Shown piece by piece: positions 55,608 through 64,000 of a stretch of 64,000 nt of DNA. The stretch comes from Oopsacas minuta (taxonomy: Eukaryota > Animalia > Porifera): positions 357,690 to 421,689 of the forward strand of contig JAKMXF010000354.1 in the NCBI GenBank assembly GCA_024704765.1, written 5' to 3'. Position 1 is the stretch's first letter. Every line of letters starts with the position of its first letter. The notes below the pieces were generated by a model. It worked only from the letters and a program-made list of their open reading frames with translations. It was not told the origin of the DNA and did not search any database. Both the position numbers and the translations under genes were made by a program.

Positions 55608-58600
55608 TTAAGCAGGAGCAGTAGATCGTACTACGAGTAGTCCCTTCTGACTGCGGTTAGTAAAGTTGTTATTCCTAGAACAGATATAGTTGTAGCTTCC
55701 TGCTGGGAACCGAAGGAGAGGAGCACTGAATGATGCATATGCGTTATCTAATAGGTTATTCAATGTCTCTTTATTTTCCACAGAATCTGTGGCACAACCA
55801 GTGAAGCATTGATAATAGCCAACTGAAGATAGGAGGAGAGCAAGATTCTTTTTAGATTCTTCAAGACTAGGAATCAAATTAATTTCATCGTATGTACTCA
55901 TGTCGTACCAAACTACTTGAGCTGATTTGAAAAGAGTTGAGTTATGAAAAGGTACTGGATAGTTCATATCTGCATTTGCAATTTCTACAATGTTATGACG
56001 ATCTGTTCCTGTTTTGTAAGAAAATTAATAATATCACAAATCACATCCTATCTTTATAAATAAGCTATATAACAACAAATACTAACCTCCTCTCCCCTCT
56101 CCTGCATCCCCTGCTTGTCCATCTCCAGCTGGATTTTGATTGTTGTGTGTGTTAGAACCTATATACGTATATAAAGACAAACTCAAATATATGTGTGTAC
56201 TTTTTCTCTTTCGGAGTATGTTAAGGTCAAATATTACTAAATCTGAAAGTATGATTAAAGGGCTAATGCACATACATGAAGGTTTAGAACAAATTATCAG
56301 GGATAAAAATCATAAAATTACTGGAAAATCCGATATGTTCTTAGAGTTTTCTATTGATAGTCAGTTGTATTTCCGTAGGCTAATTATAGTAAATTACTCC
56401 ATAATCAATCCAGATGAGTAATAACTAGGGCAAGCATTAGGATCGCTCGATCACGATCGCGATACTTTTTTGTACAAAAATTTTCGATCATTTTTGTATA
56501 CTTTGAATGCTACTATTATTAGCGTTTTTTATACTTAGGTAATTGTTCCAAATTTGTGTTCAACAATCAGTAATATTCGTTCGTAGAATGCGTGATTCTC
56601 CACCTATGTTTCTTTTGGCATAAGAAATGATGTAATTATCAAAAATATATGTCTTGAATATTACACAAACGATCGGAAAAAATGATCGAGATCGGGATCG
56701 CGATCTTGTTTAACACGATCGACTAATTCCTTAGACTAATAACAAACCTGTCCATTGAAAGTGTACGATATCATTTTCAGTGATATACAGTCTGTTCGGG
56801 ATAAAGTCATATTCCACAGCTGGATACACCTGCACTATGTTACCTCTCTTACCTCGTACATTAACATTATATATGTCAACTGTATCCATATTCACTGTTG
56901 TATCAGGAGTAATAGCATTTGTTGGTCTGGGTATGAACATATGTACATGAGAACGATCTTGAAAAGTTCGACCAAACTGAGCTGTATTTATAGCTAGCCT
57001 GAGAGCTCCGTTAGTTATAGAACCAACATCAACATACGGGTTCTGAATAACAGGGGATCTGATTCGGTTAAATCTACAGGAAAATTATATTAAAGTACAA
57101 TATAGACAAGATACAGCTGTCAATATATATAAATAACTCACCTATCTTCATTGTAACTGGAGTTTGTATACCAAGGATCATAGTCATCAGTAGATATGTT
57201 GTATCTATAAATCTATATTATTAAATCTCAATGATTGTTTGCTTGTCTGTTGTCAAGGAAAGGATTTACGGTATGCAATTTTGAAATTGTCGCATAACTA
57301 TGTATTTATCGTGTTTATCAAGGAAGTAATAAGAATTCAATAAAACTTTACCAAATATATCGAAAATGCTGAATCCGATTTTCACACTTCTGGATTAATC
57401 ATATGTAAATTTATTGTTGTTTTTATGAATATAAACTAAACAAATTATCCTAATCTCAAAATATAAGTACAGGCTTGCTCTTAACGGCTACACAGGGTTG
57501 ATCTTACAAAATATTTCAATAATATATATGCCATATACGTATATTTTGTGAATTACATTGTTCTAAATATATTTATATTATAATTCTCAAAGTGGCCGTC
57601 AATTTGGAGAATAATGGATACCTCGGGGCGCAATGCGCCGAGTTCATCGCGAAGCGACGAGCTAAAGGCTCGTATATTCTTTAAAATTCCATCCAAAGTT
57701 AATTATTCAATTCAGCTTAAGCAACACTAACCTTATCCTTAGAACACATCTCCTAGGTGCTTGGTCTAGGAAGTAAGGTAGTGTTATAGTGTAGTTGAGG
57801 GGGTAACCAGTTCTACTGTTACCCAGATGGTTAACTCGTGTCCATCCGGCCTGTTGACAATCTGGTTCTTGCAGAAGGATGAGACAGCTCGGTGTAATGC
57901 TAGGATAAGGACGAGCCCATTTACGAGTAATTTGATCATTGTTATCATTTTCACAATTGGCCTGATTACGTCCCTCGTCTATCTCTAAGTAATTGTAGAA
58001 ATCCAGCCATTCTCCTAAGTATAATATACCATGGATAAGAACTCATTTCCTATACAAATTAAATAATTTAACTTACCTGCATTAGCAATGCATTCAGCCT
58101 CGTTATTCCATTTGCTAGTGTCACGATAGATTTCTGTACCCTCAAACTTCTCTCTACACAGATATTTCGGCTTTACGTTAAAACTCTCACTCTGATAATA
58201 TGAACATCGATCAGTGTCATCTACTAGTACAGCAACATCCTACAGGTTAATTAATTGAATCATATATGGGAATATATAACCTTAAGGTCTAACTTACCCT
58301 CCATGGTGTAGGATGCCAGTAAGGATAGTAGTCTCTCTCCTCAGGACACTCATATCCTCTCCTGTTGGCGTTAGGGTTCTGTCGGGTGAAACGAGCCCCA
58401 GCATAACCTAGACCAGCGAATTGACCGCTATTTATGATCTGATCAGCCAAGAAAAGACCTTTAGTAAACAAGTAAACAAATTTAAACAAACATAATATGT
58501 GTATAAATAAATATAACATATACCTGAATTTCTCTCTCTAACATAACAGTCATCATAGTACCCAAATGTCTCATGTAGACCCCTGTTATTGGATACTGAA

Positions 58601-59339
58601 TTAGCTCTTCTGTTATTGTACTGATTCTGATTCTCGTTTAGATTATCAGGAGCAGTGTAGTCTTGAGTATTTGTTTCCTTTCCATCTCGCAATACATCCA
58701 AAGTATCGTCAGAGCCAGCAGCAATATCATTATTTACAGCTAACATAATACCGAATTAAACTAATAGGAATGTCTACATAATAAATGAATAAAGCAGGAG
58801 TCATTTATTATGTAGACATAATAACTCACCCTCAGGCTCAGCTTGACATGTATACTGTATCACAATTTGACAGTTCAATTTATGTGGATCGTTATTATCG
58901 CTACCCCCACATCCATGCTGATTAGTCCACTCAGCTGTTAGGAAGCTGCGACCAACAGATCCACTTTGGAAGTAATTCTAGAGGAGAATAACAAAGATAA
59001 TAAATGAACAAGTATATAACTTCTAATTATTCTACCATATAGTATATCTCAGTCTCTTCTGTGAAAGGATCATCTGTTTTGTCACCAGTGTTATATCCAC
59101 CTCTGTTGTTATTCTGTAATACAGTAATAGGATAAATAACAAAGTTCATAGACTATAATATTCAAAGGAATATTCACCTGAGAATCAAATAATCTGTTAG
59201 CATTATTTCGGTTAGCAGATCGCTCGTTGAGCCTGTTGTTACTACCTCTAGGGTTATGCATGTAGCAATCTCCATTGCTCTGATGCACAAGACTGATAAG
59301 CACCAGAATAGCAGCTAATATGGGCGTTACACCTCTCAT
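55608..59339 (-). CDS. Secreted DD3-3-like protein, about 11 exons
   Basis: Signal peptide, then [31 protein letters not shown]|[74 protein letters not shown]. Exons verified at both ends; some middle boundaries not mapped exactly. Confidence 0.85.
56441..56723. repeat. GATC-rich imperfect inverted repeat (possible MITE relic) in a DD3-3-like intron
   Basis: Two CGATC-rich clusters; tcgatcattttt near 56485 is the reverse complement of aaaaatgatcga near 56680. Confidence 0.4.
57622..57673 (+). mobile_element. Possible 3' end of a non-autonomous Helitron/Helentron-like element
   Basis: Short GC-rich island ..gcgccgagttcatcgcgaagcgacgagc..ctcgt in an AT-rich intron; resembles gcgaagc hairpin ends followed by CTAG-like termini. 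Confidence 0.3.
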
Positions 59340-60218
59340 AGTCTGACACAACAAGAATCTCAATTGAGAAATATACACGTTTCTATTTTAGTTAAACATA
59401 TTCGTAGAATTGTAGAAAGTAAGTATTATAAATTTACATTCAGAATATTGACAACAATAAAATATCTAAGATAATCTAATAAAATGTTTTGAATATAAAA
59501 TGGTCGCTTTTAGTGAAATGAGAAACAAAGAACTAATATCTCTGTACCCAAATTAATGGAGATTCTGCCTTAGCATCTGTGTGCATACTACAGAGACTTA
59601 TACAAAGATAAATAATTCCCTCTTATATATACCACCGAATCACGTATCAGCGTATCAAATCTTCAAATAGTGCCTGGATCCGATGTCGTAAGATCAAGCC
59701 AAGGGAAACACGAGGAAATACTAATTAAGGAATTTGCTAGTTTATTAGTAAATAGATGATTTTAACGGAGTATAGATAATACAATATACAACCAAATCTG
59801 GAATACTTAAGAAAAACATTCTCTGAAATAATGAAAGTAAAGAAATCATTTGACCCAGAATCATAACCGATAAAATGACATATTGCAGATAATATTAGGA
59901 CAGTTATGAAAGTAGATACAAATACGTCTGTATTACTATATAAGATGAATTTGGATACTTCAATTTCAAGAATTCCATTAGTACGTCATTAACAAAGGTA
60001 ACAAAATATGTAACATACAGAACATCGACATTATATAATACGTATATAGGTAGTGGCAGGAATGAGTAGTGACTCCAAAAAGTTGCACCGATCCCGATAA
60101 GTTGAGAACTAGTAGTCATGCACGCATATCAAAATTCAATAATTTCCTCAAACTTTTTCAAGTAAAACGAATGCAAATATACAAAATTAGAAATATATAA
60201 AATACAAACTAATTCAAT

Positions 60219-61415
60219 TCATTCTTCGCAACATTTAGCTACAAATTTGTTTCCTTTACTAGGAGAAATGGGCGGAGTTGGAGTGGGTACCAATCGTATA
60301 TTATCTTGTTGTGTCCCTGCTCTAACACGACGACGAGATACAGTTGCAATGTTCCTATCAACATCATGAAAGATCTTAACTAGAGTAACGAATGCACTTT
60401 GTATATTTTCACCGTTATTCACAACCGAAGTTTCCTGAAAAAATATACCTTCCCTTCTAGCGAAATCAGCACCCTCTTGGAAGCTAACCTCTCTATCCGC
60501 ATCTTTCTTATTACCTAGAATAATATACACAGGTAAAGAATCCATGGTACACTGCCTAGCTTTATTCAGCCAGACAGGCAGATCTTCAAAAGATTCTCTA
60601 TCATTACAAGAATATACCAACACAACTCCATTAGCATTCCTATAGTAAGATGCTGGTAGTGCGTTATATCTCTCTTGCCCAGCTGTATCAATAATATCAA
60701 GATTTACGAATTTATTATCCACAGCCATTCTCCTTGTGAACACGCCTATGCCAATTGTGATGCTAGGGGTATTTGTCCTAATTCGACCATCGTACAGAAA
60801 CTGAGCGATTGAGGTTTTCCCTGTGCTAGCATTACCAATTATTATAATCTTAAGGTTACGATATTTATGAGAGTTCTCAGGTTGTATTGGTTGTGGAACT
60901 GATTGAGTGCGTTCCCTAGGTTGATCAAGCATAATCCCTTCATGAATCCTAGAACTAACACTTCTCCCTCGTCCTAATGTATTATCATCTCCCATTAAAG
61001 CATTTTCATTAAAAGTATCTAGAATATCTAGGATGTTTCTAGCTACACATATAACCTCACGTGAACGGATTAGAACTTCTATTGTCGCAAAGCAATATAC
61101 ATAACTGTTCATGACATCTTGGTGTATATCTTCCCCAACCCAAGCAACGAGATATCTCTTTCTTGCTCTACCCTCCCCAAAACTCTCCACATTAATATAC
61201 ATGTACAATATCTTATCTGCAGTCAGTGAACGCCTAAAGTCCATGTTATCACCTTTGTCGTAAACTGATAGACATAATACTTGGTTTGGATCTGAAGGTC
61301 TATCAAATTGAATGTCAGTGTATGCAAAAACAACCCAAGTATTTGTTGTAGATCTACGAATGTCTTGAATTGCTTTCTGTATATATTCCTGGTTTGTATA
61401 GACATCAATTGCCAT
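60219..61415 (-). CDS. ADF-H (drebrin/Abp1/coactosin-like) domain fused to a Rab-family GTPase, 398 aa, intronless
   Basis: N-terminal ADF-H pattern TWVVFAY..KILYMYINV..RYLVAWVGE..CVARNILDI. G1 GNASTGKT, G3 DTAGQERY, G4 GNKKD, G5 ETS, C-terminal CCEE. Likely ATG 61415. Confidence 0.85.
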   Translation of the reverse strand: MAIDVYTNQEYIQKAIQDIRRSTTNTWVVFAYTDIQFDRPSDPNQVLCLSVYDKGDNMDFRRSLTADKILYMYINVESFGEGRARKRYLVAWVGEDIHQDVMNSYVYCFATIEVLIRSREVICVARNILDILDTFNENALMGDDNTLGRGRSVSSRIHEGIMLDQPRERTQSVPQPIQPENSHKYRNLKIIIIGNASTGKTSIAQFLYDGRIRTNTPSITIGIGVFTRRMAVDNKFVNLDIIDTAGQERYNALPASYYRNANGVVLVYSCNDRESFEDLPVWLNKARQCTMDSLPVYIILGNKKDADREVSFQEGADFARREGIFFQETSVVNNGENIQSAFVTLVKIFHDVDRNIATVSRRRVRAGTQQDNIRLVPTPTPPISPSKGNKFVAKCCEE

Positions 61416-61761
61416 CAGATTTCCCAACAAACTATACAAGTTTAATTAGGATAGACAGACTTAAGTTTGGTAAGGAAGTAACTATACTCATGAATTCCTG
61501 CCGAGGGCACAACCCCTTGGGAGCGGTCAATACAATTCAAGTAATAAACCAAGTTTAAAATGTAGTTAATATTAGATATCAGGTAAATAGGACTCGATAC
61601 CTAGGGATGGTACAGCTAATTTCCTATATCCTACGTTCTAAATTTTGTACTGTTTGTTATAGCTGAAAATAAGAACAGAAATCAGAATACTTAAATAAAG
61701 TTACAACAAAGTTTGAAATGTCGAAACTAGAAATATATAAAATTCGAAATTCCTAAACTAA

Positions 61762-62935
61762 TTAATTATTGGATAGAACTAAAGAAGACTCTCCCAATAT
61801 TTGACATAGCTCTCTTAATCTCTGCTGTTTCTCTGGTATACCAACTAATTGAACTTCTAACAACTCCTTTTCTTCCTTCAAACTCAATCTAGCAGAATAA
61901 TTCAGGTCTTCAACATGCCAGTTACCTGTTCCATCAAACTGAAGCAAATGTGTGTGGAATTTCCTGATTACAAATTAAGATAAATTATATGTGAGAGTAG
62001 CAATAATTGCATAGGAAATACTCACCATAGAGATGGTCTGTGAGATATAGTTAGTAGAGTAATGCCTAGATTAAGAGCTGTCTGATAGATTGAAGCTTCT
62101 GCATCTAGACTAACAGCACTAGAGCATTCATCTAACAGAGCGAATCGTGGCCTAAAATTCACATATAATTCATACTGGTGTTAGTTTATATAATAGGGAA
62201 TTGAGAATCTATGAAATATTAGATCATGAATTTCGAAGATATTATCGGCATTATACAAAATATGTGAAAACTGAAAACTACTCAATTCGAATACAGAAAA
62301 ACTCGGATAACACGTAGCCCCTCGGGAAAACATAATTAGTACGTAGATACTAACCTGGTGTGAGTCTTATCCAAATACAGTGAAAACTCGTTAATACGAA
62401 TTTCCGGTTAAGACGAACAGAATTTTACACAATTTTAGTCCGTGCAATGGAAATTCAATTGTTTTACTCCGGTTAATATGTACTCCGGATAAGGAGTACA
62501 AATCTCGACGGTCCTTTTGTGTACGTATTAACGAGGTTCTACTGTAGGTAGTGCATAACAATGAATGATAAATAACTTTTTGTGATATAAGAATAGTACG
62601 ACATAATTACTATACACTCTTACATATGGTAAAATATCCTTGCCATGCCAATTCTCTGTTTCTCTCCTCCTGACAAGACATCCTTCCAATCATTTATTGC
62701 ATCCCAACCTATTTAATAGAATAATTCCAATTTAAATTTATTAAATCTATAAATATATCCGTATAAGGAAATAAATTATATTAACTCACCTCCTTCTCTT
62801 TCTACGAGATATTTCAAGTGAACAATCTTCATAATATCATCCAATTGACCAATAGTAACACCTTTACGTATTAGATCTTCATTCGTATCAGGATAAGTCA
62901 CTTGATTTTTCAGATTACCCAAGCTCATATATGGC
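61762..62935 (-). CDS. Peroxisomal ABC half-transporter ABCD1/ABCD2-like, last four exons only
   Basis: Exons 62935-62790, 62708-62624, 62151-62026, 61963-61762 splice in frame: [78 protein letters not shown]. Confidence 0.92.
62378..62544. mobile_element. Tc1/mariner (pogo/Tigger-like) MITE, 167 bp, in an ABCD intron
   Basis: TA|CAGTGAAAACTCGTTAATACG ... CGTATTAACGAGGTTCTACTG|TA: about 21-bp imperfect TIRs with TA target duplication. Confidence 0.88.
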
Positions 62936-63868
62936 CTAAAATAACGGTTGATAAAAGAAATTCAACTTTCGATTGTAGAAATGCCAGGGAAATACTAAGT
63001 TATCAAAAGTGTGGGGAATACGAAAAATCTTTCTTACAAAATAAATACGTATCATATTAGGGACATATGAATGAGAGCATATTATGTATACGGTAAAGAA
63101 TATTAACATAACATCTGGATTCTAAAATCTAAGGGATTATCGGGCCAACTTTGCTTACTTATATCAATATATCAATGAAATTCGAAAACAATATGATAAC
63201 AGAAAATGAGTGGAATACAATTACGGATATCTACCATAGTATAATAGTTGAAATACTTTGATGAGAAATTAGAGAATACAGGGTCTTAGTGAATACAGTA
63301 ATTCGGTACTCTTCAATACTGAAAATCTTGTTATCAGTGTACTCAATCTAGCAATGATTACCTTACAAATCGCAGGAACACAAATAGGCAAATGTAAACA
63401 TATTCAAAATAAAATTCGATCAAAGTGAAATAAGGAATAATCCAAAATGGATATTAAAACTATTCAGTGACAAGCTATACTGAAACATAATACATTGCTG
63501 AGTTATGCTTTCAATCTCAAATTAACCATAATGTAATCAGAAACAGGGACAATAAAATGAGAACAGAAAGTTTCTACACAGTAACGGTTTAGTGAAATAG
63601 CAAATTTAGAATACATAATAATGAATGTATTGGAGATTGAAATGGGAGTGTTGAGATTAAATGGGGGTGTTATTTACTGAAAATGACAATAAATTATTCT
63701 ACACTAATATTGAGTAGATATAGTTATGTTTGTGGAGCAAGCATTGGATGTGAGCAGCTTGTGACTTGTAGAGAGCAGTATTGGTAGTAGCAGAAATATT
63801 GAAATTTTGTATAAATAGGATCAGACAGTTAAGATAAATAAACAAATAATTAACAGTAACAAACAAAT

Positions 63869-64000
63869 ATGAACTCATTTGAAGAAGTTAGTGATTTCGC
63901 CATTAGAACTTCAGGAGAATGCAAAAAGCTAGAAATGGTAAAACAAATTCTTAAGGAAAATTACAGAGATTTGATAGAATTCCCGTTACTACAGCTGATT
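63869..64000 (+). CDS. 5' end of an unidentified ORF running off the window
   Basis: MNSFEEVSDFAIRTSGECKKLEMVKQILKENYRDLIEFPLLQLI, open for 44 codons to the window edge; aattaacag 12 nt before the ATG. Confidence 0.5.
   Translation, partial: MNSFEEVSDFAIRTSGECKKLEMVKQILKENYRDLIEFPLLQLI

Follow-up and report, generated by a model that had tools for sequence, protein, structure and literature searches.

The window, that is, the whole stretch of 64,000 nucleotides that was analysed (G+C content 36%), contains at 60219-61415 a single open reading frame (ORF) on the minus strand, which runs from 61415 to 60219 and codes for a product of 398 aa. The first ATG of this ORF is located at 61415 and its stop codon at 60221-60219, and the frame is bounded upstream by an in-frame stop at 61448-61446. 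A preliminary description of this DNA had reported one uninterrupted ORF; its position was correct, but its strand was missed: the plus-strand translation of 60219-61415 is riddled with stops, and all the peptide strings quoted in that description were found in the minus-strand translation. The locus is a real, intact, single-exon gene (the ADF-H/Rab gene), and its product is composed of four parts, from the N-terminus: an ADF-H domain, about 45 residues of disordered linker, a G domain of divergent Rab4-like type, and a variable CCXX tail. The features of this gene and of the one adjoining it upstream are the following (in brackets, the evidence used to delimit them):

60219..61415, minus strand: whole coding sequence, single exon, 398 codons plus stop (ORF and counterparts)
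60996..61415, minus strand: ADF-H domain, residues 1-140 (AlphaFold, Foldseek, hhalign 97%, Pfam 23.4 bits)
61155..61184, minus strand: F-loop, the loop between strands 3 and 4 of the ADF-H domain, residues 78-87, with basic RKR (alignment)
60861..60995, minus strand: linker, residues 141-185, predicted to be disordered (pLDDT 26-33, omega 0.90, alignment)
60894..60917, minus strand: linker motif RERTQSVP (invariant columns in the alignment)
60351..60860, minus strand: Rab G domain, residues 186-355 (Pfam Ras, PDB sequence matches, Rab alignment)
Within 60351..60860, minus strand: G-domain motifs, namely G1 (194-202), switch I (T220-F226), I242 (the Rab Trp site), G3 (D243-E248), YYRNA (257-261), G4 (N302-D305), and G5 (E328-V331)
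60222..60350, minus strand: variable tail, residues 356-398, ending in CCEE, Cys codons at 60228-60233 (translation, alignment)
61762-62170 and beyond, minus strand: 3' exons of an ABCD-type ABC transporter gene, ending 346 bases upstream of the ADF-H/Rab gene

Neighbouring genes in the window are of animal type, coding for NELF-A, a TRP-type channel with ankyrin repeats, a Tudor protein, and RED. Searches of 58000-64000 against Rfam, and of the small ORFs adjoining the ADF-H/Rab gene against Pfam, gave no match. Published glass-sponge genomes are compact, with less than 40% G+C, many single-exon and nested genes, and strong microsynteny (PMC10282587), and the features of the window fit these traits.

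Evidence for expression was sought in sequencing runs. None of the runs on record as RNA holds the ADF-H/Rab stretch. Four other runs hold it, and one of them, X4, was alone in showing three GT..AG joints (minus strand) in the upstream ABCD gene, which confirmed introns of 62, 81 and 472 bases; because of these joints X4 behaves as RNA. The X4 contigs span the entire ORF and both flanks with no joint inside the ORF, and their depth over the ORF is 150-470, a value not clearly above that of the ABCD intron (150). The ADF-H/Rab gene is likely transcribed. Two other observations were made in the flanking DNA. In the three DNA-like runs, the segment 62283-62596 within an ABCD intron has a contig depth 20-35 times that of its surroundings; loose ends and variant joints are numerous there, and the segment looks like a high-copy short repeat. 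On the other side of the gene, the depth of X4 reaches a maximum of about 8600 between 59300 and 59456; an ORF (59109-59378, minus strand) opens with a signal-peptide-like stretch, and pieces of minus-strand ORF follow downstream to about 55600. The region 59109-59456 probably represents exon 1 of a strongly expressed gene for a secreted protein, and Pfam gave no match for the ORF in it.

When 5.8 billion proteins were searched, either with the single sequence or with a profile of the family, only one small family was retrieved, all of it from ENA assemblies. Full-length counterparts are 44-56% identical and retain the start, both domains and a CCE[EDV] tail. The order RPS26, DPH4, ABCD transporter, ADF-H/Rab gene, RED, and PTR2 transporter is conserved, and AFG1 shares a contig with the ADF-H/Rab gene in the relatives, as it does in the window; on the basis of this shared gene order, the family members were considered to be counterparts in related species. 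For AFG1, seven relatives are 58-79% identical, and beyond these come named animals from many phyla, none of which exceeds 44%; this pattern indicates an animal that lacks a close named proteome. Judging from the aligned sequences, the joint conservation of the ADF-H and Rab parts across the counterparts is well beyond chance.

Half of the copies are nevertheless disrupted, a fact that the preliminary description had passed over. Four of the eight are intact (those of the window, L001, L003, and L006), and the other four carry a stop (L007) or frameshifts (L004, L002, and L005). L007 (4121-5329 in assembly ERZ25072730) has one frame throughout, with 69.5% identity to P0002, in which a TGA at the variable position of the conserved R.RT.SVP leaves an ADF-H-only ORF and a Rab-only ORF. 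The L004 copy contains at least three frameshifts, and AFG1 on the same contig is intact; L002 contains two; and L005 contains one, close to codon 6 within a T run, where an assembly error may be the cause. These data were weighed together with those on expression to establish if the fusion could be an artefact, either of two adjacent genes or of transcripts that start downstream and encode the Rab only. For such an artefact speak the lack of the stretch in runs on record as RNA, the X4 depth over the ORF, not clearly above that of the intron, and the stop that parts the two halves in L007; against it, the single frame is free of stops and conserved end to end, the Met-Ala start is conserved in four species, the N-domain is under selection (see below), and no splice joint lies within the ORF. 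We regard this explanation as extremely improbable. Conservation of one ORF in several species shows that, as had been claimed at the outset, the fusion did not arise from a faulty gene model.

Selection was estimated from the pair L003 and L006 only (dS 0.35), the pairs that include the window being saturated (dS of about 1 or more). Omega for this pair was 0.31 for the ADF-H domain, 0.23 for the G domain, and 0.41 for the tail; the overall omega was 0.34. Both domains are under purifying selection, yet loosely for a Rab. The locus could then be thought of as a fast-evolving and largely dispensable member of a lineage-specific expansion, intact by chance and with little function. This would be in line with the four broken copies out of eight, one of them beside an intact AFG1 on the L004 contig, with the overall omega, and with an identity of 52-56% versus 66-79% for AFG1 in the six closest relatives. 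However, the ORF has remained intact in the window and in three other species, with dS reaching about 1 or more; omega in both domains is well below 1; the linker motif is conserved, as are the start and the tail; and one of the disruptions (L005) lies in a T run where an assembly error is possible. Dispensability of the locus is therefore judged to be improbable.

The N-terminal part of the product had been proposed to be an ADF-H domain of the drebrin/Abp1/coactosin type, and sequence, profile and fold all agreed with this proposal. In Pfam, the Cofilin_ADF family (PF00241) has a curated cut-off of 22.4 bits; residues 12-98 scored 20.4 bits when the whole protein was scanned, just below that cut-off, and 23.4 bits (E 5e-5) when residues 1-150 were scanned alone, which is a marginal pass. 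Three of the six family members matched Cofilin_ADF at E up to 0.1. When 1.84 billion representative proteins were searched by phmmer with residues 1-150 as the query, ten matched: three family members, two low-complexity proteins, and five proteins with four to seven bona fide Cofilin_ADF domains each. Two candidates from the N-domain scan, P0018 and P0019, were rejected as relatives, being low-complexity or repeat matches. The nearest relatives of the N-domain outside the family are P0020-P0024, proteins of 676-1504 aa with four to seven consecutive Cofilin_ADF domains; we know of no protein with more ADF-H domains per chain.

Profiles were then compared. A profile of the six family N-domains (A2) was aligned by hhalign with a profile of the ADF-H repeats from multi-ADF-H proteins (A3) with 97% probability and an E of 1.1e-10 over 88 columns. 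Among solved structures, A3 matched drebrin, drebrin-like protein and coactosin at 3e-17 to 1e-10, with drebrin at 3e-17, and A2 alone matched the ADF-H domain of drebrin (E 0.005) in an ungapped alignment that spans the WxGE motif, helix 3 and helix 4. The N-domain was modelled by AlphaFold using the six family sequences only as input, and hence the model is independent of any ADF-H input; a merged alignment (A4), mis-aligned in the helix-3 region with a 15-column gap, was excluded from folding. Secondary structure follows the ADF-H succession in the model (pLDDT 80, pTM 0.75), with helices at residues 9-21, 60-63, 99-115 (the long one) and 128-139, and strands at 26-33, 46-56, 69-77, 85-93 and 121-125. 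When it was compared with the PDB by Foldseek, the best 50 listed matches were all ADF-H domains. The top one was drebrin (5y1z; E 1.3e-7, TM 0.72/0.81), followed by HIP-55, Entamoeba coactosin, yeast Abp1, and coactosin-like protein, with GMF also among the matches. In the ESM Atlas, 40 out of 40 feature hits of the N-domain were Cofilin_ADF clusters, and a structure match to drebrin-like protein was obtained (TM 0.81). Pfam, the profile-profile comparison and the family-only fold model thus establish residues 1-140 as a true ADF-H domain of the drebrin/Abp1/coactosin class.

The C-terminal domain matched Pfam Ras over residues 189-347 (E 4e-37), and its best 60 PDB sequence matches were all Rab/Ypt proteins, Rab4A being the first (1.6e-31) and Rab4B, Rab2, Rab14, Rab1, Rab18, and Rab11 following at close scores. 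It is about 36% identical to a Rab4-like protein from a choanoflagellate. The window protein contains GNASTGKTS as G1, DTAGQE as G3 (with the catalytic Gln present), NKKD as G4, and ETSV as G5. Its tail ends in CCEE, and every counterpart that reaches the end has CCEE, CCED or CCEV; CCXX is a listed substrate motif of Rab geranylgeranyl transferase (PMC2652301). The earlier identification of a Rab with a CCXX tail was thus confirmed. On sequence grounds, this domain is a divergent Rab, nearest to Rab4, which probably still binds and hydrolyses GTP.

Deviations in switch I and G5 had been noticed previously and taken as a sign that nucleotide cycling may be altered. They exist, but are minor: the switch I Thr (T220) is present in the window protein, and G5 reads ETSA in three of the five counterparts whose alignments reach it. 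The switch I Thr is unaligned in counterparts P0003 and P0004, and therefore this region evolves fast. A larger departure, which had been overlooked, is the replacement of the interswitch Trp of KLQIW by Ile or Met in all family members. In comparison with ordinary Rabs, the family retains the P-loop, DTAGQE, YYRNA.G, NKKD and ETS; it has TIGI[GD][VM]F versus TIGV[DE]F and YSC.D versus YDIT, and one additional residue after G5. With regard to the RabF motifs (RabF1-F5), YYRNA and LVY are retained, the Trp of KLQIW is changed to Ile or Met, and the others are partly changed. Since the interswitch Trp is replaced, the partner-recognition surface would be expected to differ from that of ordinary Rabs, and with RabF motifs only partly kept, recognition by the Rab escort protein could be impaired. 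Three proteins from Tulasnella (P0006-P0008, 535-668 aa) were rejected as family members, as they matched in the G domain only (36-46% of the query) and no Cofilin_ADF was listed for them. The GTPase part of these proteins scores far above single-domain Rabs against the family profile, and two of the three are named 'Insulin-like growth factor 2 mRNA-binding protein 3' at NCBI, which looks like a misannotation.

The linker between both domains is poorly conserved, with a nearly neutral omega of 0.90 (L003 versus L006, the one unsaturated pair), except for two Arg/Ser motifs. Residues R149, R167, R169, S172, and P174 are invariant in six out of six aligned proteins, and the family form of the second motif, also passed over in the preliminary description, is RxR[T/S]xS[V/F]P. 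The consensus of AGC kinases is RxRxxS, and one type of 14-3-3 site is RSxSxP; the linker motif looks like a candidate basophilic-kinase and 14-3-3 site.

Based on these features, a mechanism can be proposed in which a prenyl-anchored Rab switch with its own F-actin-binding module would couple a membrane to actin in cis, a proposal to which we give an even chance. The geranylgeranylated tail would anchor the protein on an endomembrane, the G domain would alternate between its GTP and GDP forms, and the ADF-H domain, with its basic F-loop and an equivalent of coactosin Lys75, would bind actin filaments, so that a Rab with a built-in actin-binding effector would link a vesicle or organelle membrane to F-actin. 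Phosphorylation of the RxRxxSxP motif in the linker and 14-3-3 binding might gate this link, as suggested by the invariance of the linker Arg, Arg, Ser, and Pro.

The equivalence mentioned is that of K86 in the F-loop, which aligns with Lys75 of coactosin, a residue needed for F-actin binding in human coactosin-like protein and dispensable in Entamoeba coactosin (PMC4161475); the latter fact counts against an actin tether. Also against it, divergence within the domain is greatest in the third that contains the long actin-contacting helix (both Pfam and hhalign align only residues 3-99), and some ADF-H domains bind other partners, as in 5y1z, which is the drebrin ADF-H domain in complex with ZMYND8, a non-actin partner. 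The partly kept RabF motifs, the four disrupted copies out of eight, an omega high for a Rab, and the ambiguous expression weigh on the same side. The ADF-H fold might instead have lost actin binding and serve as a docking or autoinhibitory module, which would bind Arp2/3 or another partner, or would be folded onto the Rab switches until the linker is phosphorylated. The divergence of the C-terminal third with its long helix, the Pfam score of the whole protein under the cut-off, the best structural match being a drebrin domain solved with a non-actin partner, and the presence among the matches of GMF, an Arp2/3 binder, would all suit such a repurposed fold, and the conserved linker motif would suit a regulated intramolecular switch. 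However, every method places the domain closest to the F-actin-binding classes of drebrin, Abp1 and coactosin, and not to GMF or twinfilin; the basic F-loop and the Lys75 equivalent are retained; and the full-length model, which is poor (pLDDT 55, pTM 0.36), shows no confident interdomain contact. This last model is uninformative on such contacts, and the N-domain model alone was used. Overall, we consider loss of actin binding possible, although unlikely.

Returning to the coupling of membrane and actin in cis, its most complete form would be a Rab that is its own actin-binding effector, that is, a geranylgeranyl-anchored, GTP- and phospho-gated organelle-actin tether, invented and multiplied in one early-branching animal lineage; this fuller version is put forward only tentatively. 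In the cases known to us, Rabs reach the cytoskeleton via separate effector proteins. If the proposal is true, the ADF-H/Rab protein would be a one-protein membrane-to-actin coupler and a second, independent kind of large Rab beside the EF-hand ones. It would offer a small testable protein for studying how a GTPase switch can be wired in cis with a filament-binding module and a linker under phospho-regulation, and an instance of trafficking parts being invented, and often lost, within one little-studied lineage of animals. In a glass sponge, it might anchor organelles in syncytial tissue or couple membranes to the actin scaffolds of the silica; such scaffolds have been reported in glass-sponge silica by work cited in PMC10280926.

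A combination of ADF-H and Rab in one protein was not found described in searchable literature, and two papers on glass-sponge genomes (PMC10282587, PMC10280926) mention neither Rab nor cofilin. A survey of Rabs lists only three with an additional domain, two of which are Rab44 and Rab45 with EF hands (PMC3425129), and a review of large Rabs includes only EF-hand and coiled-coil types (PMC8303950). The preliminary description had stated that known large Rabs carry EF-hand and coiled-coil extensions and not ADF-H, and both sources bear this out (PMC8303950, PMC3425129). The large Rabs (Rab44, Rab45/RASEF, and Rab46/CRACR2A) are built like the window protein, with a functional domain at the N-terminus followed by a spacer and then, at the C-terminus, by the Rab and a prenylation site (PMC8303950), and they are its nearest whole-chain structural neighbours in the Atlas. 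Unlike them, with their N-terminal EF-hand and coiled coil, the window protein carries an ADF-H domain and gave no EF-hand match in Pfam. It resembles the large Rabs in layout and is not a member of the Rab44/45/46 group.

The ADF-H domain finds its closest matches, by sequence and by structure, in drebrin, Abp1/HIP-55 and coactosin, whose fold it shares, and it retains the WxGE motif as well as the Lys of the F-loop. However, its identity to them is only 14-19% and its long helix is divergent, and those proteins bear SH3 or other tails or stand alone, and none of them is known to be joined to a GTPase. The G domain finds its best matches in Rab4, Rab2, Rab14, and Rab11, with which it has DTAGQE, YYR.A.G, NKKD and ETS in common; it differs from Rab4 and its kin in the Ile or Met in place of Trp and in TIGI[GD][VM]F, and it shows clear orthology to no Rab subfamily. 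In the Rab27a-melanophilin-myosin Va system, a Rab-marked membrane is held on actin in trans by separate effector proteins. The presumed outcome is the same, but here a module of actin-binding type lies within the Rab chain itself. The ADF-H and Rab architecture is real, conserved, and new to the searchable literature, and represents a large Rab with a new N-terminal module.
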